From positions 267,655 through 331,654 of IMG/VR virus record IMGVR_UViG_3300023174_000039: 64,000 nucleotides of DNA. The stretch is one strand, 5' to 3'. Position 1 is the first letter of the stretch; the number at the start of each line of letters is the position of its first letter. Below are positions 50,617 through 64,000 of the stretch, one piece after another. A program made the position numbers and the translations under genes. Below the pieces are notes generated by a model, which searched no databases, had not been told where the DNA came from, and saw only the letters and a list, made by a program, of their open reading frames with translations.

Positions 50617-51447
50617 ATGAACCGTTTTGAACAATTGATTGAATATGTGATCAATGATGACGAGCAAAAAGCTCGCGAACTATTCCACGACATTGTTGTG
50701 GAAAAAAGCCGCCAGATCTACGAAGACATCATGGCTGAAGAAGCCGAAGAAGAACTCGAAGAAGGCGCAGAAGAAGAACTTGAAGAATCTGAAGAAGATC
50801 TTGAAGAAATGGACATGGGCGGCGACGCCAGCAACGACCTGATCGACGATGTTGAGATGGAAGAAGAAAGCGACATGAACATGGAAGCCGAAGGCGACGA
50901 AGAAGATTTTGGCGATGAGCATGACGAGCCAGACATGGACAACATGGGTGGTGCAAGCGACATGGATGCTGACAATTCTGAACCAGCTACCAAAGACGAC
51001 ATCATGAATTTAGAAGACAAACTGGACCAGTTGATGGCCGAGTTTGAAGACCTAATGGGTGGCGACGACGAAGGCAATGGCGACATGATGGGTCCAGACG
51101 AAGGCGGCGACGCTCTTGAAATGGACGACACAGAAGAAATGGGCATGATGGAAGCTCTTGAACTGAAAGCAGCTCCAAAGCCAGTGACTTCCGAAGAAGG
51201 CAACACAAACAAAAAGTCTACAGTGGCAGCCAACTCAGGCGCACGTGGTGCAATGGCCAAGCCAGTACACACAGGTGCTGACGGCGGTGGACACCATGAC
51301 TCTAGTGCTTACAAAAACACAGTGAAAGAACTTGGCGTGACACCCACACAAGATGCAGGTAAGAAGGCATTTAAATCAGCAGCTCCTGCTCCTGTTAAAA
51401 CACAAGCTTCAGGTGTGAACATTAGAAGCCCACTGCCACGTAACTAA
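50617..51447 (+). CDS. Acidic prohead core-like protein
   Basis: D/E/M-rich; between portal and protease; TAAATA at 50581-86, AGGAG RBS. Confidence 0.7.
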   Translation: MNRFEQLIEYVINDDEQKARELFHDIVVEKSRQIYEDIMAEEAEEELEEGAEEELEESEEDLEEMDMGGDASNDLIDDVEMEEESDMNMEAEGDEEDFGDEHDEPDMDNMGGASDMDADNSEPATKDDIMNLEDKLDQLMAEFEDLMGGDDEGNGDMMGPDEGGDALEMDDTEEMGMMEALELKAAPKPVTSEEGNTNKKSTVAANSGARGAMAKPVHTGADGGGHHDSSAYKNTVKELGVTPTQDAGKKAFKSAAPAPVKTQASGVNIRSPLPRN

Positions 51448-51450
51448 GCA

Positions 51451-52083
51451 ATGAAAACACTAAGAGAACAGCTTACCTTTAATCAGGCCAACATCCAAGT
51501 GTTGGAGGAATCCGACATGACTGGGGGCAAGCATCTCTATCTTAAAGGCATTTGTATTGAAGGCAACAAGCGCAATGCAAATGAACGTGTCTATCCTTTA
51601 CACGAAATAACCAAGGCAGTTAACACAATTAATCAACAGATTAAAGAAGGTAACTCTGTTTTAGGTGAAGTGGATCACCCAGATGATTTGAAAATCAACC
51701 TGGATCGTGTGTGCCACAGCGTTGAAGGCATGTGGATGGATGGAGACGCCGGATGTGGTAAACTTAAAATTTTGCCAACTCCAATGGGAGAATTGATCAA
51801 GACGTTGCTACAATCTGGTGTTAGACTAGGTGTATCAAGCCGTGGAAGCGGCAACGTTGATGACAGAACAGGACATGTAAGTGACTTTGAAATTGTCACT
51901 ATAGATGTGGTTGCACAACCCAGTGCTCCGAATGCTTATCCCAAAGCAATTTACGAAGGACTCATGAACATGAAGTACGGACATAGATTGCTGGAAGTGG
52001 CTCGTGAATCTGGGCAAGACAACAAAGTGCAGAGATACCTCAAGGATGAAGTTAAAAAGCTCATCCGGGATCTCAAAATATAA
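51451..52083 (+). CDS. gp21: Prohead core protease gp21
   Basis: NANERVYP, LGEVDHP, PTPMG, LGVSSRGSG, DVVAQPSAPNAY. Confidence 0.95.
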   Translation: MKTLREQLTFNQANIQVLEESDMTGGKHLYLKGICIEGNKRNANERVYPLHEITKAVNTINQQIKEGNSVLGEVDHPDDLKINLDRVCHSVEGMWMDGDAGCGKLKILPTPMGELIKTLLQSGVRLGVSSRGSGNVDDRTGHVSDFEIVTIDVVAQPSAPNAYPKAIYEGLMNMKYGHRLLEVARESGQDNKVQRYLKDEVKKLIRDLKI

Positions 52084-52095
52084 GGAGAACCAGGC

Positions 52096-53190
52096 ATGTT
52101 AGATGCTATCAAACCATTGCTAGATAGTGACCTGATCACCGAGGAAACTCGCATGGAGATTAACGAAGCGTGGGAAACCAAGCTAAGTGAAGCTCGTGAA
52201 CAGGCTCGTGTAGAACTCAGAGAAGAGTTTGCACAACGCTACGAGCACGACAAGTCAGTAATGGTGGAAGCCCTTGACAAAATGGTAACAGAAGGTCTCG
52301 CCGCAGAGATTCAAGCCGTGGCTGCTGAAAAGCAAGCATTGGCCGAAGATCGAGTGCGTTTCCAACGCAAGATGAACGAATCAGCAACGAAGTTTAACGG
52401 CTTCTTGGTTAGTAAACTTGCAGAAGAAATTGGCGAATTGCGTCGAGATCGTAAAATGCACACAGAAGGTCTAGCCAAGCTAGAAAACTTCATGGTGCAT
52501 GCATTGGCTCGTGAGATCCAGGAGTTTGCCGCAGACAAACGTGACGTAGTGGAAACCAAAGTCCGCCTCGTTCGTGAAGCCCGTGCCAAACTTGAAGGAT
52601 TGAAAGCACGTTTCGTAAAAGAAAGTGCAGACAAAATGAGTCAAGCTGTTAGCCGTCACTTGAAGGCTGAACTTACACAATTGCAAGAAGACATCAAAGT
52701 TGCTCGTGAGAACAATTTTGGTCGTCGTATCTTTGAAGCGTATGCAAGCGAATTTGGTGCTACTCACCTGAATGAGAAAGCCGAAGTGCGCAAGTTATAC
52801 TCTGCATTGCAGAACAAAGACAAGCAATTGGCGGAAGCCATCAAACTCACACAAAAGGCGAAAGTCGTTGTGGAGTCAAAAGAACGCGAACTGCGTATGA
52901 TCAAAGAATCCAACGAGCGTGACAGCACGATGGAAATGTTGCTCTCTCCCTTGAACCGGGAAAAGCGAGATGTCATGCGTAATTTGCTCGAAAGCGTCCA
53001 GACAAATCGTCTGAAAAACGCATTCGAAAAGTATCTACCAGCAGTGTTGGAAGACCGATCAGTGAAAGCCTCAAAAGTGATCACAGAGACAGTTTCCTCA
53101 GTTACCGGTGATAAGACTGTTCCTACCCAAAACGTTGATCAAGAAGATCGCAGCAATGTGATTGACCTCAAGCGTCTGGCTGGACTGTAA
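52096..53190 (+). CDS. gp22: Prohead scaffolding protein gp22-like
   Basis: 364-aa coiled-coil, E/K/R-rich; between gp21 and gp23. Confidence 0.85.
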   Translation: MLDAIKPLLDSDLITEETRMEINEAWETKLSEAREQARVELREEFAQRYEHDKSVMVEALDKMVTEGLAAEIQAVAAEKQALAEDRVRFQRKMNESATKFNGFLVSKLAEEIGELRRDRKMHTEGLAKLENFMVHALAREIQEFAADKRDVVETKVRLVREARAKLEGLKARFVKESADKMSQAVSRHLKAELTQLQEDIKVARENNFGRRIFEAYASEFGATHLNEKAEVRKLYSALQNKDKQLAEAIKLTQKAKVVVESKERELRMIKESNERDSTMEMLLSPLNREKRDVMRNLLESVQTNRLKNAFEKYLPAVLEDRSVKASKVITETVSSVTGDKTVPTQNVDQEDRSNVIDLKRLAGL

Positions 53191-53212
53191 TTTAAATTTT
53201 TAGGAGACTTAA

Positions 53213-54409
53213 ATGTCAGAACCATTGTTAGAAAGTCGCTGGGGCGAAACCAAAGAAGCATTGCTCGAAGGTTTGAACGGTACCCGTCGCAATTCCATGA
53301 GTGTGATCCTTGAGAACACACGCAAGTACTTGAAAGAAAATGCATCCGCAGGTTCCACAAGTTCCGGCAACATTGCCACATTGAACCGCGTGATTCTTCC
53401 CGTGATTCGACGTGTTATGCCAACCGTTATTGCTAACGAGTTGGTTGGTGTTCAGCCAATGACTGGTCCAGTTGGTCAGATCCATACTCTGCGTGTACGT
53501 TATGCACAGAGCTTGACTGATACATCAGCAGCCGCAACCAGCGTCACAGCTGGCCAAGAAGCCCTGAGCCCATTCACTATTGCTACTGCATACTCTACAG
53601 TACCAAGAGACACAGCTACAGCTACATCATATACTGGTAACAACACAGCAGTGATGGAAGGCAACGGCGGTAAGCAAATTTCCGTCCAAATCTTGAAGCA
53701 AGCTGTTGAAGCCAAGACTCGCAAATTGCAAGCTCGTTGGACATTTGAATCTGCACAAGACGCACAAGCCATGCACGGTATTGACGTTGAAGCAGAAATC
53801 ATGGCTGCTTTGGCTCAAGAGATCACAGCTGAGATTGACCAAGAGATCTTGTTATCTCTACGTAGTCTGGCTGCTACTGAGTTCACATACAACCAAGCTA
53901 CTGTATCAGGTACAGCCACATTTGTTGGTGACGAACATGCCGCATTGGCTGTTTTGATCAACCGTGTTGCTAACTTGATCGCCCAACGTACACGTCGTGG
54001 CGCTGGTAACTACGCTGTTGTATCTAGTGCCGCATTGACAGTGTTGCAATCTGCAACTACTAGCGCATTTGCACGTACTACAGAAGGTACTTTTGAAGCT
54101 CCTACAAACACCAAGTTTGTGGGTACATTGAACGGCGCTATGCGTGTGTTCGTTGACTCTTATGCCAGTGACACAACACCTGTGTTGGTTGGTTATAAGG
54201 GCTCTTCAGAAGCTGACGCTCCTGCATTCTACTGCCCATACATTCCATTGATGAGCAGTGGTGTTGTGTTGGATCCATCAACATTCGAACCAGTCGTGAG
54301 CTTCATGACGAGATATGGTTACATAGAATTGACAAACACCGCATCGAGTTTTGGTAATGCGGGCGATTATGTTGGCGAGATCGCCGTGAGTAATTTGTCT
54401 TTCAGTTAA
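53213..54409 (+). CDS. gp23: Major capsid protein gp23
   Basis: LVGVQPMTGPVGQI, VEAKTRKLQARWTFESAQD, EITAEIDQEI, FYCPYIPL, FMTRYG. Confidence 0.97.
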   Translation: MSEPLLESRWGETKEALLEGLNGTRRNSMSVILENTRKYLKENASAGSTSSGNIATLNRVILPVIRRVMPTVIANELVGVQPMTGPVGQIHTLRVRYAQSLTDTSAAATSVTAGQEALSPFTIATAYSTVPRDTATATSYTGNNTAVMEGNGGKQISVQILKQAVEAKTRKLQARWTFESAQDAQAMHGIDVEAEIMAALAQEITAEIDQEILLSLRSLAATEFTYNQATVSGTATFVGDEHAALAVLINRVANLIAQRTRRGAGNYAVVSSAALTVLQSATTSAFARTTEGTFEAPTNTKFVGTLNGAMRVFVDSYASDTTPVLVGYKGSSEADAPAFYCPYIPLMSSGVVLDPSTFEPVVSFMTRYGYIELTNTASSFGNAGDYVGEIAVSNLSFS

Positions 54410-54435
54410 TCACTGCAAGGCTTCCTCAAAGCACC

Positions 54436-54460
54436 AAAAAGCACCTTCGGGTGCTTTTTT
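54436..54460 (+). terminator. Rho-independent terminator with cUUCGg loop
   Basis: aaaaagcacc-ttcg-ggtgctttttt. Confidence 0.9.
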
Positions 54461-54461
54461 G

Positions 54462-54522
54462 TTGACAAAAATATCTAAAAATGTTATTGTTATTAGCAGA
54501 AATAGCACTCTCAAACTAAATA
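54462..54522 (+). promoter_or_regulatory. Sigma70-like promoter plus late promoter core for the homing endonuclease
   Basis: TTGACA 54462-67, 17 bp, TATTGT 54485-90; TAAATA 54517-22. Confidence 0.55.
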
Positions 54523-54527
54523 ACAAT

Positions 54528-55283
54528 ATGAAACCTTATACCTATCTAATTAAACATCGACCAACAGGCAAAATCTATTATGGCTATCGTTCTGCTAACA
54601 AAGTAGACCCACAAGAGGATTTATGGAAACATTACTTTACAAGTAGTCCGGGAGTACAAAAGCTGATTGAAGAAACCGGGACCGATAGCTTTGATGTAGA
54701 AATACGCAGGACATTTGAAACCAAAGAACAGGCAAGTAATTGGGAAACAAGAGTTCTCAAACGCTGTCGAGTATTAGAAGATGACCGCTGGATAAATCAA
54801 AATGTAGCTGGATACATTGTACCAACAGAAGAAAGCAGAAAGAAGATTAGCGAGTATCACAAAGATAAACCTAAGAGTGAAGAACATAAACTGAATTTAA
54901 GCAAATCTCAAAAAGGAAAACCCAAGATAAACAGCAAAAATCAGACGCCTGAATATAGAGCACTGATGTCTAAACTTAAATCTGGACCAAACAACCCAAT
55001 GTATGGCAAAGGGTGTACCGAAGAAAGAGCTAGAAAAATAAGTGAAGCCAATAAAGGACGCAACGCACCTAACAAAGGTGTGCCCATGAGCGAAGAACAA
55101 AAACAAAAACTCAGTCAAAGAATGAAAGGGCGTAAAGTTGATCCTGAAGTGCTAGCCCGCAGAGTAGCATCTCAAACTGGTCAAACCCGACCCAAGCTGT
55201 ACTGTGCTCACTGCAAGCGAAACATAGCTCAAGGTTGGTTCCACCGACACGGTGATAACTGTAGCAGTCAACCCACAGCCTGA
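54528..55283 (+). mobile_element. Free-standing GIY-YIG/NUMOD3 (Seg-like) homing endonuclease; likely start 54528
   Basis: PYTYLIKHRPTGKIYYGYR, WETRVL, WINQN; NUMOD3-like SEEHKLNLSKSQKGK and MSEEQKQKLSQRMKGRK; C-terminal CAHC...HGDNC. Confidence 0.85.
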
Positions 55284-55336
55284 CCACTTGACTCCGGCTT
55301 TTTCCAGGCCCTACGCCCAGTCACACAGTGGCCAGC

Positions 55337-55344
55337 GATAAATA
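55337..55344 (+). promoter_or_regulatory. Late promoter variant GATAAATA
   Basis: 29 nt upstream of ATG 55374. Confidence 0.55.
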
Positions 55345-55373
55345 AAAAAGCTGTAAAAAACAAGGAAACACAT

Positions 55374-57413
55374 ATGCCATTATCAATCGGACCTGGCTGG
55401 AGCATTGGCCCTGGATGGAGCATTGGGGGAGGCGGAGCCGCCCCTGCTGTCGCAACTGATCCGTACTTCATGTACAACTCGCTGTTGCTCACAGGAGATG
55501 GTACTAATCTCTCACAAAACAACACGTTCTTGGATTCAAGTACCAACAACTTTGCCATCACACGAGCAGGCAATACCACACAAGGCACGTTCTCTCCTTA
55601 TGGCACCAACTGGTCAAATTACTTTGATGGGTCTGGGGATTTTTTGACTGCGCCAAGCAATGCCGCATTTAATGTTAGCAACACATGGACAGTTGAGTGC
55701 TGGTATTACCCAGTAAGCAGATCAAATACATATCCATGTATTATCTCACTCTCAGATGGCAACTATGCAAATTCAATAGTTCTATTTGATAGACATGCTA
55801 GTTCTTCTACTAAGTTTTCTTTTGCCGTTGGATCCGCTGCTCTTAATTCAGGCACAACCAACGTTGTTGATGGCACATGGTATCATATAGCTTTAGTTAG
55901 CAATAGTGGTGTTGTTACTATGTATGTCAATGGCACTGCAGAGGTCACAGCAAATGTAACTGCTGGTGCTGTAAGTAAATCTGTTTATATTGGTGCAAAT
56001 TTTGATTATGCGTCTTATGCAACATACATCAATGGTTATATCAGCAATGCCAGAGTTGTTAAAGGTACCGCAGTTTATACAGGTAATTTTACCCCAAGTA
56101 CCACACCACTAACAGCAATCACCAACACAAGTTTATTAACCTGTGCTGCCAGTCGTTTTATTGATAACAGTACTAATAACTTTACTATTACCAAGAACGG
56201 TGATACCGCAGTTCAAAGATTTTCACCATTTGAGCCCACAGCCGCCTACTCAACCAGCACAATCGGTGGGTCAGGATACTTTGATGGCTCAGGTGATTAT
56301 TTGAGCGTTGCAAACAATGCAGCATTTGCCTTGGGATCTGGTGACTTCACTGTTGAATGTTGGTTTTATATGAACAACACATCAACTGCAATGTGTATGT
56401 TTGAGAATCGTCCAAGTAATACAGGTAGTGGAATTAATATGTTTGTCAATTATTCTGCGGCTGGACAAGTTCAATATAGAGACGTTACCGGCGCACCAAT
56501 TTCATCATCTATTACAGTATCAGCAAATACATGGAATCATTATGCATTAGTGCGTAGTGGTTCAACAATTACACTTTGGATTAACGGTCAAAGTGGCGGC
56601 ACTGTTACAAAAACAACAAACTTTACTGATACTACTTGTGTATTGGCGCAAGACCAGGGAGGCGGATTTAACTTTGCCGGTTATCTAAGTAATTTTAGGA
56701 TTGTTAAAGGCACTGCTGTTTATACAAGTGCATTTACACCAAGTACTACACCACTAACAGCCATTGCAAATACAAGTTTATTAACTGGCTTTACCAACGC
56801 AGGTGTCATTGACAATGCCATGATGAACGACTTGGAAACAGTTGGTGATGCAAAAATATCTACCACACAATCAAAGTTTGGCGGTTCAAGTATGGCGTTT
56901 GATGGTACTGGTGATTACTTAACACAACCAAGCTCACAAAACTTCAATTTTGGATCAGGCGATTTCACAATGGAGGGATGGTTTTACCAAACAGGTTTGT
57001 CATCGTCCTACCCTGGTATAGTTTCAAATCCATTAGCTTGGGGCAATGCAGGTGCGTGGGCAGTTTTATCTAGCCATGCCGCATCCGGAGTAAGAAAATT
57101 ACAATTTTATTGCTACAACGCTGACCAATCTAATCCTTTACTGTTAGGAACAACATCATTATCTGATAATACTTGGTATTATTTTGCACTAACTAGATCA
57201 GGCACAACCTTTAGATTGTTTTTGAATGGGACACAAGAGGCGACAGCTACATTTAGCGGATCCGTTACTAGTGTAAGCAGTGGTCTTGTTGTAGGTATTA
57301 ATCAAACGGCTTATGCGTTTCAAGGTTACATAGACGACCTCCGCATCACCAAGGGATACGCCAGATACACCACCACATTCACGCCACCCACAGCGGCACT
57401 ACCAACTTATTAA
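55374..57413 (+). CDS. LamG/concanavalin A-like lectin-fold virion protein A1 (three modules)
   Basis: Repeated FTVECW.Y, W.H.A.VR, FxGYI..LRI.KG motifs. Confidence 0.8.
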   Translation: MPLSIGPGWSIGPGWSIGGGGAAPAVATDPYFMYNSLLLTGDGTNLSQNNTFLDSSTNNFAITRAGNTTQGTFSPYGTNWSNYFDGSGDFLTAPSNAAFNVSNTWTVECWYYPVSRSNTYPCIISLSDGNYANSIVLFDRHASSSTKFSFAVGSAALNSGTTNVVDGTWYHIALVSNSGVVTMYVNGTAEVTANVTAGAVSKSVYIGANFDYASYATYINGYISNARVVKGTAVYTGNFTPSTTPLTAITNTSLLTCAASRFIDNSTNNFTITKNGDTAVQRFSPFEPTAAYSTSTIGGSGYFDGSGDYLSVANNAAFALGSGDFTVECWFYMNNTSTAMCMFENRPSNTGSGINMFVNYSAAGQVQYRDVTGAPISSSITVSANTWNHYALVRSGSTITLWINGQSGGTVTKTTNFTDTTCVLAQDQGGGFNFAGYLSNFRIVKGTAVYTSAFTPSTTPLTAIANTSLLTGFTNAGVIDNAMMNDLETVGDAKISTTQSKFGGSSMAFDGTGDYLTQPSSQNFNFGSGDFTMEGWFYQTGLSSSYPGIVSNPLAWGNAGAWAVLSSHAASGVRKLQFYCYNADQSNPLLLGTTSLSDNTWYYFALTRSGTTFRLFLNGTQEATATFSGSVTSVSSGLVVGINQTAYAFQGYIDDLRITKGYARYTTTFTPPTAALPTY

Positions 57414-57422
57414 GGAACACAC

Positions 57423-58346
57423 ATGGGATTCACAATCGGCCCTGGATGGGCAATTACAGGGGCATGGGCCATTGGCGACACTGGGGGCGGAGCCTCAGTC
57501 ACACCCACAGTGGAATACTTGGTGGTTGCCGGCGGAGGTGGCGGAGGTGGTAAAAATACCGGTGGTGGTGGAGGTGCAGGTGGTTTTAGAACAGCCACCG
57601 GATTTGCAGTCACATCCGGTACACCTATCACAGTCACAGTTGGCGCAGGTGGCGTTTCAGCTGCAACCACCACTCAAGCATATGGTGGCAACGGTGGCGA
57701 TTCAGTGTTTGGCACTATTACCGCCACTGGTGGTGGCGGAGGTGGCTACGGTGTAGGCGCAGGTCAACGTGCAGTTGCTGGTAAAGCCGGTGGTTCAGGC
57801 GGCGGTGGTGGTGGCGATGACACAGGCGGACCATATTCAGGAGGTGCAGGTAACACACCATCTACTTCGCCAGTGCAAGGTTATGCTGGCGGCCAAGGAA
57901 ATTCACCCGGAGCCAATGGCGGTGGTGGCGGTGGATCATCAGCCGCGGGCGAAAACGGCATTGTGAATACTCGTGGTGGAAATGGCGGAGCAGGAACAGC
58001 AAGTTCAATATCTGGAACAAGTGTGACTTACGCCGGTGGCGGTGGTGGTGGTGGTAATGCAACTGCTGGCGCAGGCGGTTCTGGTGGTGGTGGCGCAGGA
58101 GGCGCAGGCAATCCAGGAGGCGCAGGAACTGCAGGAACCCCTAATACTGGAGGCGGTGGAGGTGGTTGCGGTGGTTACGAAACCAGTAACGCATCTGGTG
58201 CAGGTGGATCGGGTATCGTGATCATTCGTTATCCAGATAGTTATGCAGCCGCTACTGCCACAACAGGGTCACCCACTATCACAGTAGCCGGAGGCTACAG
58301 AGTGTACAAATGGACCACTGTGGGTTCAGGATCAATAACATTTTAA
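57423..58346 (+). CDS. Glycine-rich virion protein B1
   Basis: VEYLVVAGGGGGG, NTGGGGGG, GGSGIVIIRYP, GGYRVYKWT. Confidence 0.75.
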   Translation: MGFTIGPGWAITGAWAIGDTGGGASVTPTVEYLVVAGGGGGGGKNTGGGGGAGGFRTATGFAVTSGTPITVTVGAGGVSAATTTQAYGGNGGDSVFGTITATGGGGGGYGVGAGQRAVAGKAGGSGGGGGGDDTGGPYSGGAGNTPSTSPVQGYAGGQGNSPGANGGGGGGSSAAGENGIVNTRGGNGGAGTASSISGTSVTYAGGGGGGGNATAGAGGSGGGGAGGAGNPGGAGTAGTPNTGGGGGGCGGYETSNASGAGGSGIVIIRYPDSYAAATATTGSPTITVAGGYRVYKWTTVGSGSITF

Positions 58347-58360
58347 TCGAGGAAACACAT

Positions 58361-60373
58361 ATGCCATTATCAATTGGACCCGGCTGGAGCATTGGCCCTG
58401 GATGGAGCATTGGAGGAGGCGGAGCCGCCCCTGCTGTCGCAACTGACCCCTACTTCATGTACAACTCATTGCTGTTGACCGGAGACGGAACTAACAATGC
58501 CACAAACAACACATTTGTAGATGGTTCAACCAACAACTTTAGTATCACTCGCAACGGTAATACCACACAGGGCACCTTTTCACCATATGGTGCTAATTGG
58601 AGTAACTACTTTGATGGTAGTACCTCTTATCTAACAACAGCATCTAGTTCAGCCCCGTCTAGTGATTTTACACTGGAGGCATGGATTTATAGGACGGCTG
58701 CAACAACTGCTGTTATAATTGGTTATGGATCGGAAACAACCGGTCGTACATTTATGTATGTTACATCGGGCGGCAGTTTAGCTACAAGCATTTATAATAT
58801 AGGAGACACTACATTTGGTGGATCAATTCCTCTAAATCAATGGACTCATATTGCCATGGTTCGCTCAAGTAATGTAATTACGGGCTATATAAACGGCACT
58901 GCTCAAGCAACAACGACATCAACTGCTACAACTGTAGGGAATACAGGTGGGTTTGGGGTGGGAGCCGGAAAAGACGGTTCAAACAAATTTACAGGATATA
59001 TTTCTAATGCTAGGGTAGTCAATGGAGTTGCAGTTTACACATCAGCCTTTACGCCAAGTACAACGCCACTAACAGCCATAGCAGGTACAAGTTTGTTGAC
59101 CTGCCAAAGCAACAGATTCAAAGATAACTCATCAAATGCATTTGCATTAACTGTGTCAGGCACCCCAACCGTGCAAGTGTTCTCACCATTCAGTCCCACC
59201 GCAGCCTACTCAGCAAGTACAATCGGTGGGTCAGGATACTTCGATGGCGCAGGAGATTTTTTAACAGCTCCAGCAAACACTGCATTCAATTTGGGCACTG
59301 GCGACTTTACCATTGAATGTTGGGTTTACTTGACAAATTCGACGGCCACTACTCAAAGCATTATGGGTATTGGTGACACTGGAGCAACCAATGATATTCA
59401 ACTTTGGTATAATAATGTTGCCAACAAAATCACATTTAATGTGTATGGCAACCCCAGATTTGATTCTAGTTCCAATGTCACTACCGGCAATTGGATACAC
59501 CTAGCGTGTACCCGCGCATCGGGTGCATTCAAGCTGTTTATTAATGGTGTACAAGAGGCCGCTGGCTCTCTAGGCAACAATTTATCAAACAACGTGCTGG
59601 TCATTGGCAGACCTTACGCATCACTTCCAAATAATGAATATTTTTATGGTTACATCAGTAATCTTCGCATTGTTAAAGGCACCGCGGTCTACACCTCGGC
59701 CTTTACACCACCTACCTCACCGGTCACTTCAATCAGTGGTACCAGCATATTAACCAACTTTACCAACGGTGGTATTATTGACAATGCAATGATCAACAAC
59801 TTGGAAACAGTGGGTGATGCCAAAATATCCACTGCACAATCAAAGTTTGGCGGTTCAAGTATGGCGTTTGATGGTACTGGCGATTATCTAGCCGTATCTC
59901 CTAATGTAACTAATAACTTAGGCACCGGTGATTTCACAATTGAAGCATGGATATATCTAACATCGGCCTCTACATATCAATTTTTAATAGGTAGTAGCAA
60001 CAATGTTAGTGGCTACATGATGGTTGGACTAAACGTACCGCTTTCCCCAACATCAACTATTGCTTTAGGTACGTCTGGCCAGACTTGGCCACTACAATTT
60101 GGAACAGGCACAACATTTACATCAAATACGTGGACTCATATTGCTATCACTAGATCAGGCACAACAAATAGAGCATTCATCAATGGAGTCCAACTTGGTT
60201 CTAATGTAACCGATTCTACTAATTGGACATTCCCAAGTAATACAATGTGGATAGGTAACCAATCAGGCGGAAATTCCTTGAACGGTTACATAGACGACCT
60301 CCGAGTAACCAAAGGCTATGCACGTTATACAAGTAACTTCACGCCTCCCACTGCGGCACTACCAACTTATTAA
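58361..60373 (+). CDS. LamG-like protein A2 (start at 58361, not 58310)
   Basis: Same MPLSIGPGWS start as A1; GAGG RBS. Confidence 0.8.
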   Translation: MPLSIGPGWSIGPGWSIGGGGAAPAVATDPYFMYNSLLLTGDGTNNATNNTFVDGSTNNFSITRNGNTTQGTFSPYGANWSNYFDGSTSYLTTASSSAPSSDFTLEAWIYRTAATTAVIIGYGSETTGRTFMYVTSGGSLATSIYNIGDTTFGGSIPLNQWTHIAMVRSSNVITGYINGTAQATTTSTATTVGNTGGFGVGAGKDGSNKFTGYISNARVVNGVAVYTSAFTPSTTPLTAIAGTSLLTCQSNRFKDNSSNAFALTVSGTPTVQVFSPFSPTAAYSASTIGGSGYFDGAGDFLTAPANTAFNLGTGDFTIECWVYLTNSTATTQSIMGIGDTGATNDIQLWYNNVANKITFNVYGNPRFDSSSNVTTGNWIHLACTRASGAFKLFINGVQEAAGSLGNNLSNNVLVIGRPYASLPNNEYFYGYISNLRIVKGTAVYTSAFTPPTSPVTSISGTSILTNFTNGGIIDNAMINNLETVGDAKISTAQSKFGGSSMAFDGTGDYLAVSPNVTNNLGTGDFTIEAWIYLTSASTYQFLIGSSNNVSGYMMVGLNVPLSPTSTIALGTSGQTWPLQFGTGTTFTSNTWTHIAITRSGTTNRAFINGVQLGSNVTDSTNWTFPSNTMWIGNQSGGNSLNGYIDDLRVTKGYARYTSNFTPPTAALPTY

Positions 60374-60381
60374 GGACATAT

Positions 60382-61326
60382 ATGGGATTCACAATCGGGC
60401 CCGGATGGGCAATTACAGGTGCATGGGCCATAGGAGACACAGCAGGAGGCGGTGGTGGATCAACTGTTCCTGCTGAATTTTTAGTTGTTGCCGGGGGCGG
60501 TGGCGGTGCTTATGCCAGTGGTGGGGGTGGTGGCGGCGGAATAGTACATGCTGTCACAGCAAATTTCACAATGTCAACGGCGTATACTATCGCTGTTGGT
60601 GACGGCGGTGCCGGAACTAACTCGGCAAGTTTTGCAAGTTCAGGACAAAACAGTTCCATAGTAGGAACCAGTATCAACGCTGTTGCACTTGGAGGCGGAG
60701 GAGGTGCTGCCTATAATAATACAGGTGTAGCCGGCGGATCAGGTGGCGGCGGTGGATACAACTTTGGAGTTGTTGCACAAATTGGCGGAGCATCAACACA
60801 AACTTCTGGAAGTTATAACGGATATGGATCAGCTGGTGGAAGTTCAATTGATAGCCAATCACAGCCATTTTCAGCAGGTGGTGGCGGAGGTGCAGGCGGC
60901 CCAGGTGGGTCAGTTACTTCTGCCACCGGTATTGCAGGTGTAGGCGGGGTCGGACGTGCATTTAGCACATCTGGTACTTCAACATATTATGGTGGCGGTG
61001 GTGCAGGTGGTGCCGGGGGCAGCCTATATACAACACCTATAACAACAGCCGCATTAGGTGGTGGTGGAGTTTGTGGTGGCAACGGTGGTGGTACCGCTAT
61101 GAATGGTACACCAAATACAGGTGGTGGTGGTGCAGCCGACAACAGATCAACGGGCAATAATTACAATGGTACCTTTGGCAACGGTGGATCGGGTATCGTG
61201 ATCATTCGTTATCCAGACTCATATGCAGCCGCAACTGCCACTACTGGCAGCCCAACAATCACCGTCGCAGGTGGCTACAGAGTCTACAAATGGACCACTG
61301 TGGGCAGTGGCTCAATAACATTTTAA
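60382..61326 (+). CDS. Glycine-rich virion protein B2
   Basis: N-terminal 19 aa and C-terminal ~40 aa identical to B1. Confidence 0.75.
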   Translation: MGFTIGPGWAITGAWAIGDTAGGGGGSTVPAEFLVVAGGGGGAYASGGGGGGGIVHAVTANFTMSTAYTIAVGDGGAGTNSASFASSGQNSSIVGTSINAVALGGGGGAAYNNTGVAGGSGGGGGYNFGVVAQIGGASTQTSGSYNGYGSAGGSSIDSQSQPFSAGGGGGAGGPGGSVTSATGIAGVGGVGRAFSTSGTSTYYGGGGAGGAGGSLYTTPITTAALGGGGVCGGNGGGTAMNGTPNTGGGGAADNRSTGNNYNGTFGNGGSGIVIIRYPDSYAAATATTGSPTITVAGGYRVYKWTTVGSGSITF

Positions 61327-61342
61327 TCGAGGAAACATAAAC

Positions 61343-63433
61343 ATGCCATTATCAATTGGACCCGGCTGGAGCATCGGCCCTGGATGGAGCATTGGAGGAG
61401 GCGGAGCCGCCCCTGCGGTCACAACTGACCCGTACTTCATGTACAACTCACTGTTGCTCACAGGTGATGGTACAAATCTCTCACAGAACAATACCTTCCT
61501 AGACTCAAGTACAAATAATTTTACTATTACCCGCAATGGCAATACCACACAGGGTACATTCAGTCCTTATGGAAGCAATTGGTCTTTGAGTAATCCAAAC
61601 ACTTCGGATAATGGCATTGGAGTTGCATCGAATGCCGCATTAAATCTTGGAACTGCTAGTTTTACAGTTGAATGCTGGGTGAACCTGAATGCGTTACCAT
61701 CATCGAATGTCTGGACCACATCTGCTGGCGGCTACCAAGCGTTATTTGGTACTGGTCCTAGCAATAGCGCCACAGGATCACAACTGTATATTGGAACCAC
61801 AAACTTATTTTTTGACACAACGTCTGACGGAAGTGGACCAATCAGTGTTGCACACGGAATGACTGCTGGAGTTTGGTATCACATTGCTCTTACTCGTAGC
61901 GGCAATACTTTTGCCTTGTACAAAAATGGTGTGCTACTTCAATCAGCTTCTGATGCAAGCTCAATGACTTCTGGATATGGATGGGGCATTGCTAGACCAG
62001 AACCAGTTGGATCATACTCCGGCGGCTGGTTAAATGGATACATATCTAACTTTAGACTGGTAACTGGATCAGTTGTGTATGTCGGAACATTCACACCGCC
62101 CACAACACCACTTACTGCAATCTCTGGAACTCAATTGTTATTATGCCAGAGCAACAGATGGATTGACAACAGTTCAAATAGTTTTGCTGTCAGCGTTGGT
62201 AGCACTGCACCAACTGTACAACGATTCTCACCATTTGAACCCACAGTCGCCTACTCATCAAGTGTGATTGGTGGGTCAGGCTACTTTGATGGCACGGGGG
62301 ATTATTTGACTATCGCCAGATCAAATCTACTTATACCAGTTGCCAATGAAAATTTTACAATAGAATCGTGGGTTTATTTAACACAAGCCGCAGACCAACA
62401 GATTGTTGGATTTCATACACAGGGCGTAAGTTCAGACTGGCTTATATCTATAAGTAGTACAAATTATACTACATTTTATATTAGTGCTACTGCCACAAGT
62501 GTGACATCTAGTATTGCTGTACGATTAAACACTTGGAATCATATTGCGGTTGTGCGTACAAATACAAACACCATTACTTTATATGTAAATGGAGTTGCCG
62601 GGGCAACTACTACAACTACTTCAACGATGGTAGGAAATGGATCTAACCCATTGACAATTGGATCAGACTATAATGGTGTTAATTGGAGGTATACAGGTTA
62701 CATTTCTGATATTCGTATTGTCAAAGGTACAGGAGTCTATACCTCAAACTTTACTCCACCAACTGCACCATTAACAGCAGTTGCTAATACCCAACTCTTA
62801 TTAAGTTACACCAACGGTGGCATCATTGACAGCACAATGATCAACAACTTGGAAACAGTTGGTGATGCAAAAATATCTACCACACAAAGCAAGTTTGGCG
62901 GATCCAGCATGTACTTTGATGGCAATTTAGATTATTTAAACGGCGGAGTAAATTCTGGTTACAGTTTTGGATCAGGAGATTTCACTATAGAGTCTTGGGT
63001 ATATATTGTTGCTAGAGGAAGCAGCGGGTCATGTTTTGCTGGAACTTGGGCAGCTAGTGGTAGAGGATGGATCTGGCTTTCTAACCCCACTCAGTATGGG
63101 TTAGTGTATAGCACCAATGGTACTAATGAAACTGCTATATATTCAACCTACACAATACCTTTAAACACATGGACACATTTGGCTACCGTTAGAAATGGAA
63201 ATACTATTACAAACTATGCAAATGGTGTTAGTATTGGTACTGGCTCTGTTACTGGGGTTACGATTAGTACGCCTACTCAACCACTTTATGTAGGAGCCAA
63301 TAAGCAAGACGTTGATAGTAGTATAAACAATTATCAAATGAACGGTTATATGAACGATTTTAGAATAACAAAAGGTTATGCACGTTACACAGCCAACTTC
63401 ACACCCCCAACTGCAGCATTGCCTACACAATAA
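61343..63433 (+). CDS. LamG-like protein A3
   Basis: Same architecture as A1 and A2. Confidence 0.8.
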   Translation: MPLSIGPGWSIGPGWSIGGGGAAPAVTTDPYFMYNSLLLTGDGTNLSQNNTFLDSSTNNFTITRNGNTTQGTFSPYGSNWSLSNPNTSDNGIGVASNAALNLGTASFTVECWVNLNALPSSNVWTTSAGGYQALFGTGPSNSATGSQLYIGTTNLFFDTTSDGSGPISVAHGMTAGVWYHIALTRSGNTFALYKNGVLLQSASDASSMTSGYGWGIARPEPVGSYSGGWLNGYISNFRLVTGSVVYVGTFTPPTTPLTAISGTQLLLCQSNRWIDNSSNSFAVSVGSTAPTVQRFSPFEPTVAYSSSVIGGSGYFDGTGDYLTIARSNLLIPVANENFTIESWVYLTQAADQQIVGFHTQGVSSDWLISISSTNYTTFYISATATSVTSSIAVRLNTWNHIAVVRTNTNTITLYVNGVAGATTTTTSTMVGNGSNPLTIGSDYNGVNWRYTGYISDIRIVKGTGVYTSNFTPPTAPLTAVANTQLLLSYTNGGIIDSTMINNLETVGDAKISTTQSKFGGSSMYFDGNLDYLNGGVNSGYSFGSGDFTIESWVYIVARGSSGSCFAGTWAASGRGWIWLSNPTQYGLVYSTNGTNETAIYSTYTIPLNTWTHLATVRNGNTITNYANGVSIGTGSVTGVTISTPTQPLYVGANKQDVDSSINNYQMNGYMNDFRITKGYARYTANFTPPTAALPTQ

Positions 63434-63452
63434 ATTTAAATAATCAAGACAT

Positions 63453-64000
63453 ATGGTTATGGATACCAATAATTCTATAACTCAACAAAAAATATATCGC
63501 AGTATTTTTATTAGTGATGTGCACCTTGGCACAAAAGATAGTCAAGCTGGCAAATTAAATAACTTTTTAAAACATAATACTTGCGATACTCTTTATTTGA
63601 TAGGTGATATTATTGACGCATGGCGAATACAACAAAACAAATGGCGATGGAAACAAAGTCATACCAATGTTGTTCGCCGTGTTTTAGGTCATGCAAAACG
63701 TGGAACACGCGTTGTCTACATTGCAGGCAATCATGATGAATTTTTAAGACCAATGATACCATATGGATTCAGTTTTGGTCTAGTAGAAATTCATAATCAA
63801 ATAGAACACATCGGTGCTGACGGTAAGCACTATTTAGTAACGCACGGAGACTTGTTTGATGGTATAACAAGATTGGCACCGTGGATAGCATTTTTAGGAG
63901 ATAAAGCATATGACTTCGTTCTTTCACTCAATAGCAAGTTCAATTGGATACGCCATCGTATGGGTTTTGGGTACTTTAGCCTTAGCAAGTTCCTTAAACA
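63453..64000 (+). CDS. UDP-2,3-diacylglucosamine diphosphatase (LpxH-like) metallophosphoesterase, truncated by the window edge; absent from the ORF track
   Basis: Manual translation: IFISDVHLG, LIGDIID, IAGNHDE, VTHGDLFD; TAAATA at 63437-42; alternative start 63459. Confidence 0.8.
   Translation, partial: MVMDTNNSITQQKIYRSIFISDVHLGTKDSQAGKLNNFLKHNTCDTLYLIGDIIDAWRIQQNKWRWKQSHTNVVRRVLGHAKRGTRVVYIAGNHDEFLRPMIPYGFSFGLVEIHNQIEHIGADGKHYLVTHGDLFDGITRLAPWIAFLGDKAYDFVLSLNSKFNWIRHRMGFGYFSLSKFLK

Follow-up and report, generated by a model that had tools for sequence, protein, structure and literature searches.

How does a phage that carries a free-standing homing endonuclease avoid cutting its own genome? 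The question was asked outright in work on the T4 enzyme SegB (PMC2330249), and this self-avoidance is only partly understood. A free-standing enzyme lacks the intron or intein that would interrupt its own site. Here we consider the question at a locus in 64,000 nucleotides of viral DNA (hereafter the window), which form the last 64 kb of a single 331,654-bp IMG/VR record (IMGVR_UViG_3300023174_000039) rated 95% complete. In the window, a major capsid protein gene of the Gp23 family is followed by a GIY-YIG homing endonuclease gene, and the last 33 codons of the capsid gene (codons 366-398, hereafter the tail; codons 1-365 are the body) are written in uncommon synonymous codons. We conclude, with a probability of roughly 0.75, that the tail and the nuclease gene constitute a T4-type intronless homing cassette, in which a free-standing nuclease is inherited together with an allele of its target that probably resists cleavage.

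The 3' end of the capsid gene departs from the codon usage of its body

Codon 366 begins at position 54308, and the tail reads ACG AGA TAT GGT TAC ATA ... AGT TAA. The original prediction, made from the sequence of this window, held that ACG, ATA, TCG and GCG are rare or absent in the rest of the gene while the protein motif FMTRYG is intact. The quoted codons proved correct and the motif is indeed unchanged; each of the four codons occurs once in the tail and never in the body, which prefers ACA/ACT, ATC/ATT, GCT/GCA and CGT. In the body, AGA accounts for 1 of 19 arginine codons and AAT for 2 of 16 asparagine codons. From where Thr, Ile, Ser and Ala stand in the protein, a post hoc calculation puts the probability of finding all four singletons in the tail at 6e-5.

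The sliding codon-usage score that had been proposed as a check was then computed along the gene. When the gene's own usage served as the reference and the scanned segment was left out, the tail was the lowest of all 33-codon segments, with a position-specific p<0.001 and a gene-wide p of 0.07. Because the latter was the value left after correction for all segments, we adopted codon weights pooled from the family, that is, from 73 related capsid genes with the window's own gene excluded. With these weights, the tail was clearly aberrant (z = -4.8; gene-wide permutation p 0.0002). The minimum of the scan (z -5.15) was at codon 361, and the next-worst region outside the last 60 codons reached only z -3.2. 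We also defined a codon as 'private' when its frequency at that column is 5% or less among relatives without a nuclease gene at this site (nuclease-minus). The window has 8 private codons among 33 in the tail and 10 among 349 in the body.

The gene behind the tail encodes a free-standing homing endonuclease

As predicted, a GIY-YIG gene starts 118 nt past the capsid stop codon. Its product matched the Pfam families SegE_GIY-YIG (PF19835; E 1.1e-8, 35.7 bits against a cut-off of 25) and NUMOD3 (E 6.7e-16), and our statements on the DNA-binding part are based on the latter match. Residues Y4, Y6, Y17, Y18, G19, R21, E73 and N90 are invariant across 19 nuclease homologues. The nuclease sequence had no match among PDB chains at E up to 1. 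The top fold matches of the predicted structure were the catalytic domain of I-TevI, 1mk0 and 1ln0 (probability 1.0; template modeling score 0.62-0.67 on the target), with weak E-values only, because the model is multi-domain with a predicted template modeling score of 0.34. In this model, a low-confidence linker (residues 91-100) lies between the GIY-YIG domain and the DNA-binding module. The protein thus has the catalytic domain and the separate DNA-binding module of the GIY-YIG homing endonucleases. Its gene is free-standing, being located between conserved genes, without an intron or intein, and present only sporadically among close relatives.

Recoding accompanies the nuclease among relatives

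An exact search of IMG/VR for the first 33 bases of the window's tail gave no match, and relatives were reached via proteins. A protein-guided scan of IMG/VR gave 80 loci (L001-L080) with capsid proteins 82-98% identical to that of the window, and a nuclease-based scan gave 31 further loci (L081-L111) with nuclease homologues 48-89% identical. Downstream open reading frames (ORFs) were clustered, and cluster representatives were scanned for families. Among 81 distinct related capsid genes, 41 had a homing endonuclease gene directly downstream (nuclease-plus; 28 GIY-YIG and 13 HNH), and 40 did not. All nuclease homologues of at least 48% identity with an available upstream flank (L081-L111 except L106) directly follow a capsid gene; homologues below 40% identity are located elsewhere.

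Two nuclease types alternate at one site. In the L004-L062 set, the GIY-YIG + NUMOD3 type of the window is found at L006, L011, L012, L016, L021-L023, L035 and L046, and an HNH + NUMOD3 type at L004, L005, L017, L025, L029, L034, L049 and L060-L062. The two share a C-terminal part with 28-32% identity over residues ~100-250 of the window's protein, and the Cys/His motif (Table 1) falls inside it. The occurrence of unrelated GIY-YIG and HNH domains on a homologous NUMOD3/Cys-His module suggests that domains were swapped and cassettes replaced.

The closest capsid relatives, L001, L002 and L003 (98, 98 and 96% amino acid identity), have no nuclease and have optimal-codon tails, so that the window's 3' sequence is not shared by its nuclease-less relatives. 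A local spike in synonymous divergence, which the recoding idea had called for, is seen against L001 at codon 366. The two genes share 95.2% nucleotide (nt) identity over codons 1-365, where 38 codons differ synonymously and 6 non-synonymously. In the tail, identity falls to 73.7%, and 19 of 33 codons differ, all of them synonymously (Fisher p 9e-10 for the contrast between body and tail).

To score all genes, we used a measure like the codon adaptation index with weights from pooled capsid bodies, and subtracted the body score from the tail score. In all 41 nuclease-plus genes, the difference lay between -0.30 and -0.95; in the 40 nuclease-minus genes, it lay between -0.27 and +0.20, and the two ranges did not overlap (U=0, p 5e-15; U = 1 in the first set of genes). 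The recoding thus accompanied the nuclease, as had been claimed. The column-wise codon profiles of the GIY-YIG, HNH and nuclease-minus classes are alike over codons 1-365 and diverge at codon 366; in all nuclease-plus loci, the recoded patch stays within codons 366-398. On a tree of the capsid bodies, nuclease presence requires at least 14 changes, and of 12 phylogenetically independent pairs, 11 differed as predicted, none in the opposite direction, and 1 was tied (sign test p 0.001). These results indicate that the association is not due to shared ancestry.

Twin loci illustrate the pattern. In the pairs L023/L024, L046/L045 and window/L001, near-identity extends to about codon 361-367, beyond which every second tail codon, on average, is different. 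L023 (GIY-YIG) and L024 (no nuclease) differ at 10 of 365 body codons and 16 of 33 tail codons, and the tail differences fall into two clusters in which nearly all wobble bases are changed. L023 carries an insert of ~870 bp right past a terminator and a TTGA motif that it has in common with L024, and the two loci are identical again from a few bases beyond the nuclease stop codon. L046/L045 and L029/L030 behave likewise, with recoding in L029/L030 beginning only at codon 388. The terminator stems of L023 and L024 show a compensatory double change (GGCCC...GGGCC versus CGCCC...GGGCG). The tract of conversion or divergence therefore passes through the terminator with its pairing preserved.

Uncommon codons are concentrated in two hot spots

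The recoding is concentrated in codons 366-373 (T R Y G Y I E L; hot spot 1), where the profile drops in nuclease-plus loci only, and in codons 381-394 (G N A G D Y V G E I A V S N; hot spot 2). In hot spot 1, which forms the first of the two L023/L024 clusters, nuclease-plus loci show CGT changed to AGA, AGG or CGC, GGT to GGG or GGC, and ATC to ATA; GCT to GCC and AAC to AAT are also typical of the hot spots. At codon 388, GGG occurs in 15 of 44 unique nuclease-plus tails and in none of 37 nuclease-minus tails. At codon 390, the counts for ATA are 24 of 44 and 1 of 37 unique tails, and at codon 391 those for GCC/GCG are 30 of 41 and 2 of 35. The window itself has GGC ATC GCC at these three codons. 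Private codons occupy 24% of the positions in nuclease-plus tails, compared with 3% in nuclease-minus tails and 3-6% in bodies. The directions of change are mixed (T to G, C to A, T to C, C to T), so that a single mutational bias is unlikely.

These patterns bear on the main rival explanation, in which the enzyme cuts at some other place, either further upstream in the capsid gene or elsewhere, and the linked tail merely hitch-hikes with a super-Mendelian element and decays, gathering weakly deleterious synonymous changes under relaxed codon selection. Such decay predicts the linkage of tail and nuclease equally well, and free-standing enzymes can cut hundreds of base pairs from their own gene (PMC2988022). 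The window's tail, moreover, fits genome-average usage better than capsid usage (log-likelihood -40.0 versus -48.5). At the hot spots, however, uncommon codons exceed their genome-average frequencies: GGG 32-34% versus 7%, ATA 41-55% versus 21%, and GCC/GCG 73% versus 36%. Likewise, the three NCG codons of the window's tail are rare genome-wide (4-7%). The deoptimisation occurs in two patches with unchanged codons between them, and independent pairs repeatedly have their left boundary at codon 366, whereas that of resection tracts would vary. Taken together, we consider hitch-hiking decay improbable, though it is the rival to be taken most seriously.

The diversity of the tails is relevant to another alternative, namely that the recoding is regulatory, embedding a signal or promoter for nuclease expression or slowing ribosomes at the end of the capsid mRNA. 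The changes are clustered, and the promoters of T4 segA, segG, mobC and mobD lie in the 3' end of the upstream gene (PMC2988022). In this locus, however, a strong terminator and a separate promoter-like site stand between the tail and the nuclease gene, a promoter scan saw no promoter-like site within the tail, and an Rfam search gave no match above threshold. Nuclease-plus tails (at least 44 distinct ones) are diverse, with a mean pairwise identity of 0.71 and no convergence on one motif. A regulatory role is therefore very unlikely.

The window's tail follows the nuclease rather than the capsid body

The original prediction further claimed that the resistant allele travels with the nuclease. 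The best match of the window's tail is L081 (89% nt identity), which also has the most similar nuclease (88% amino acid identity) and a capsid body that is only 85% identical. L001, the best body match (95%), has a tail only 74% identical. The tail thus follows the closest nuclease and not the closest capsid body, in agreement with the claim. Both this and the twins, whose differences are confined to the stretch between about codon 366 and the nuclease stop codon, would fit co-conversion. In other pairs, one nuclease stands in place of another. L061 and L062 have bodies identical up to codon 324, nucleases that are 33% identical, and differences at 17 of 33 tail codons, and L034 (HNH) and L035 (GIY-YIG) are near-identical twins with different cassettes. 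These pairs indicate that whole cassettes, tail and nuclease, replace one another.

A population view was obtained from the Logan contigs of four freshwater runs over positions 52900-56000. These are contigs rather than reads, are fragmented by strain diversity to the point of revealing no nuclease-less joint within one sample, and may in the best-matching run come from the source sample itself; they were used only to see where similarity ends. Over most of the capsid body, the summed contig depth ran into the hundreds (in run X1, 104-1,935 per bin over 53316-54355), and it was 14-49 at the end of the tail and in the nuclease gene; across the tail it fell from ~590 to ~25 in lake and river metagenomes. 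One contig covers 54248-54465 with zero mismatches. Contigs of other strains cease to match at 54308/54309, and one of them continues with the nuclease-minus-type sequence ACA CGT TAT GGA.

Such breaks might also arise by ordinary mosaic recombination, the tail having been swapped in from a diverged relative with the nuclease irrelevant. The fragmentation of the metagenome contigs agrees with this, as does mosaicism elsewhere in the capsid gene, where window and L001 are 83-87% identical around codons 130-150. Yet no nuclease-minus relative was found with such a tail, the best tail match is a nuclease-plus locus, and a diverged nuclease-minus donor would bring optimal codons rather than deoptimised ones. 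With the full separation of the 41 and 40 loci and the agreement of 11 of the 12 independent pairs, unrelated mosaicism is extremely unlikely.

A proposed homing cassette with a recoded target

We favor the homing cassette as the explanation of this locus. All of the original predictions that could be checked by computation were borne out. In co-infection, the nuclease would recognise and cut the capsid gene of a related, nuclease-less phage at its 3' end, which is conserved and written in optimal codons; the recognition region is probably bipartite, comprising approximately codons 366-373 and 381-394. Repair of the break from the nuclease-carrying genome would copy all DNA between the cut and the distal end of the nuclease gene. 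Tail and nuclease would move as one unit because this repair copies them together. The carrier's own tail would be a synonymous rare-codon version that escapes recognition; it would differ at many wobble positions because it must stay uncut while the protein cannot change. Its codons would be those rare or absent at these positions in the target population, that is, non-optimal ones in the phage's most highly expressed gene. The enzyme would tolerate common synonymous variants of the target, and only several uncommon codons at once would protect the carrier. The left boundary at codon 366 would be either the cut itself or the border of the region recognised. We infer that the enzyme cleaves within the stretch, that the recoded allele is resistant and that repair does the copying.

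Several points weigh against this explanation. Homing endonucleases of introns and inteins usually accept substitutions at wobble positions, even when all of these are changed together (PMC3159444). In T4, the diverged target copy borne by the MobA element did not by itself block nicking (bioRxiv 10.1101/2022.08.31.505936). SegB cleaves the DNA of T4 itself, and the authors of that work propose strict regulation of segB expression as a possible means of protection (PMC2330249); a synonymously recoded allele is therefore not necessarily an immune one. The enzyme could also cut at a site outside 54308-54409. The excess of hot-spot codons over genome-average usage (p 1e-6 to 5e-3 for the 44 unique nuclease-plus tails) comes from tests that count unique tails as independent despite their common ancestry. 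Over all pairs, the correlation of tail identity with nuclease identity (rho 0.41) is weak and similar to that with body identity (rho 0.37). We attribute this weakness to saturation of synonymous sites; the all-pairs comparison is confounded by this and by body identity, and only the close-range comparison with L081 is informative. In some nuclease-minus loci, the first downstream ORFs have no family match, and L045, also nuclease-minus, has a partly recoded distal tail (codons 388-398). The distal tail of L045 (ATA GCC GTG CAA AAT CTT ...) resembles that of the HNH-bearing L029. Judged from this sequence, L045 would either have lost its nuclease and kept the resistant allele, or have gained the resistant allele without the nuclease.

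Tentatively, and at somewhat less than even odds, rare-codon 'immunity patches' may be a general footprint of the targets of free-standing homing endonucleases, one that can be found computationally. Since the enzymes would tolerate common synonymous variants, a carrier would escape self-cleavage only by codons private to carriers, and an arms race would follow. At the capsid site, such a race would be reflected in the at least 44 distinct tails, in the two nuclease classes on one DNA-binding module and in the replacement of cassettes as a whole. Its cost would fall on the translation efficiency of the phage's most highly expressed gene, in which a selfish element would impose non-optimal codons. 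Codon contrasts between nuclease-plus and nuclease-minus loci could then map the recognition sites of uncharacterised nucleases from metagenomes; for the present enzyme, they predict a recognition region of ~90 bp with two patches. The locus is a natural experiment with dozens of replicates, in which the protein stays constant and its DNA is rewritten from one particular codon onward wherever a nuclease is present. The capsid gene is, in addition, a common phylogenetic marker, and its 3' end here would be a hotspot of nuclease-driven allele exchange.

Organization of the locus and other loci of the record

Table 1. Coordinates, in the window, of the features at and around the capsid-nuclease locus.
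Feature	Position	Strand	Basis or remark
Acidic scaffold-like gene	50617-51447		Upstream of capsid gene
Prohead protease gene (Peptidase_S77)	51451-52083		Upstream of capsid gene
Coiled-coil head gene	52096-53190		Immediately before capsid gene
Major capsid protein gene, Gp23 family, 398 aa, strong codon bias	53213..54409	+	PF07068 E 1.2e-96; phrog_138 E 2e-98
Recoded tail, codons 366-398, synonymous, codon-deoptimised	54308..54406	+	Codon scans; comparison with L001
Hot spot 1, candidate recognition or cleavage sub-site	54308..54331	+	Profile drop in nuclease-plus loci only
Hot spot 2, candidate recognition sub-site	54353..54394	+	Family codon profile; twins
Intrinsic terminator of capsid gene, hairpin GCACC-UUCG-GGUGC and U run	54436..54460	+	Fold -15 kcal/mol, z -3.07
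Promoter-like site ahead of nuclease gene, TTGACA, 17 nt, TG-TATTGT	54462..54490	+	10/12 consensus matches
Free-standing homing endonuclease gene (251 aa) with GIY-YIG domain, NUMOD3 repeats and a Cys/His motif at the C-terminus	54528..55283	+	Pfam; phrog_314 E 1e-22
GIY-YIG catalytic domain, aa 4-93	54537..54806	+	Pfam; homologue conservation; predicted fold
Two NUMOD3 DNA-binding repeats	54939..55115 (record 322593-322769)	+	Profile match
C-x2-C...H-x-H...C motif, aa 226-245, likely zinc-finger-type DNA-binding element	55203..55262	+	Sequence; in the model, beta hairpin and helix

Public runs containing the stretch are lake, river and other freshwater metagenomes. Judging from its sequence, the source is a 331.7-kb jumbo phage and not a T4-like one. 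By blastn against GenBank phages, the capsid gene had distant matches only, the closest being PA5oct, RaK2 and similar jumbo phages (68-72% nt identity), and the nuclease gene had no match. The capsid protein belongs to the Gp23 family by its profile match and by the head-morphogenesis module around its gene. The earlier label 'gp23' therefore holds as to the family; the gene is a short one, carried by a jumbo phage and not by a T4-like one.

A consensus scan for terminators missed the hairpin at 54441-54460, which folding confirmed. The terminator is kept in nuclease-plus and nuclease-minus relatives alike. A TTGAC motif follows it directly, in nuclease-minus relatives too, and the start of the nuclease cassette lies just beyond this motif. 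A motif of the I-TevI cleavage type, CNNNG, was sought by eye and was not discriminating. An Rfam match to STnc130 (30.7 bits against a threshold of 55 bits) was rejected as a chance match.

The position after the capsid gene is hypervariable among L001-L080, also where nucleases are absent. It holds a radical-SAM gene in L001, a minus-strand TPR/glycosyltransferase-like gene in L002, L003 and others, a fatty-acid desaturase gene in the L030 group, a GDSL lipase-like gene in L068, and elsewhere a DUF6165 gene. In the window, the region directly past the nuclease gene (55374-64000) contains five paralogous genes, with starts at 55374, 57423, 58361, 60382 and 61343. LamG-type genes (670-696 aa, three Laminin_G_3 repeats) alternate with glycine-rich ones (307-314 aa), and all begin with M-(P/G)-(L/F)-(S/T)-I-G-P-G-W. 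Two further copies lie on the minus strand at ~101.7 and 104.1 kb of the record. To judge from its sequence, this N-terminal motif may serve variable surface proteins as a common signal for virion attachment or export.

The record has further nuclease genes. One (HNH + NUMOD3; record ~23.0-26.1 kb, L163) follows a 251-aa ORF with only a Terminase_6C domain. In the nuclease-bearing loci L163, L167 and L168, the last 13 terminase codons differ from those of 96-99% identical nuclease-less relatives (from the set L165-L244), with CCC changed to CCT, TTC to TTT, ATT to GTG, ATG ATG to CTT CTT, and CGC to AGA. This patch is of the same kind as the capsid tail but includes conservative amino acid changes; it represents only about two independent lineages and may overlap the start of the nuclease ORF. 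Another nuclease gene (HNH + NUMOD3, 174 aa; record ~152.2-155.3 kb, L162) lies two ORFs past an AAA clamp-loader-like gene, from which a 105-aa ORF separates it.

Comparison with known systems

The intron-encoded enzymes I-TevI and I-BmoI have the same N-terminal GIY-YIG fold, long linker, NUMOD3-type elements and Cys/His motif as the window's nuclease. I-TevI uses a bipartite site and cleaves at a distance from its binding site. The two recoded patches, ~50 bp apart, would fit a bipartite site of this kind. I-TevI and I-BmoI gain immunity from the intron that disrupts their site, whereas the window's nuclease has no intron.

Nuclease genes are known to cluster beside capsid, terminase and replication genes in 'HEG islands', where they mark the boundaries of exchange (Barth, Dunham and Seed 2023; PMC10448857). 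The window's genome is similar in having HNH nucleases beside a terminase ORF and a clamp-loader-like gene as well, and differs in the nuclease family, which is GIY-YIG/HNH with NUMOD3 and not T5orf172. In the text of that paper, the word 'synonymous' does not occur and 'codon' occurs once, for start and stop codons, so that codon footprints are apparently not reported there. We found no description in the literature of a codon-deoptimisation footprint beside free-standing nucleases, although reports in journals outside our coverage are possible. The type of mechanism is already known; the systematic rare-codon footprint at a capsid gene is, as far as could be found, undescribed.

The MobA / gene 60 cassette of T4-like phages carries a diverged target segment, 'homR', with 67-81% DNA identity, and different nuclease classes replace each other at that site (bioRxiv 10.1101/2022.08.31.505936). 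At the present locus, the tail shares 74-80% identity with nuclease-minus tails, and the enzymes that alternate are of the GIY-YIG and HNH classes. Unlike MobA / gene 60 with its bypass insert, the present gene is unsplit, has no bypass element and keeps its amino acids unchanged; the MobA polymorphisms alone were not protective.

By position, the counterpart is T4 segD, a GIY-YIG gene between genes 23 and 24 and thus immediately behind a Gp23-family capsid gene (PMC2988022). segD runs antisense to the genes around it, lacks its own promoter and is listed with an unknown target (PMC2988022). The window's nuclease gene, by contrast, has the same orientation as the capsid gene, lies behind a terminator and a promoter-like site, and has its best Pfam match to the SegE type; the comparison with segD is one of position.

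By mechanism, free-standing Seg and Mob enzymes of T4 cut a neighbouring conserved gene and co-convert its flanks (PMC2988022). SegF (beside gene 56) and SegG (beside gene 32) are likewise free-standing, intergenic GIY-YIG enzymes next to a conserved essential gene; each cuts the neighbouring gene of a phage that lacks it, and repair co-converts the flank and the nuclease gene, giving intronless homing and localized marker exclusion (PMC2988022). We found no rare-codon footprint described for these T4 systems. The present locus has the same layout and a co-inherited flank, with the major capsid gene of a freshwater jumbo phage as the presumed target of cleavage, and adds to them a dense, synonymous, rare-codon recoding of the carrier with a fixed boundary.

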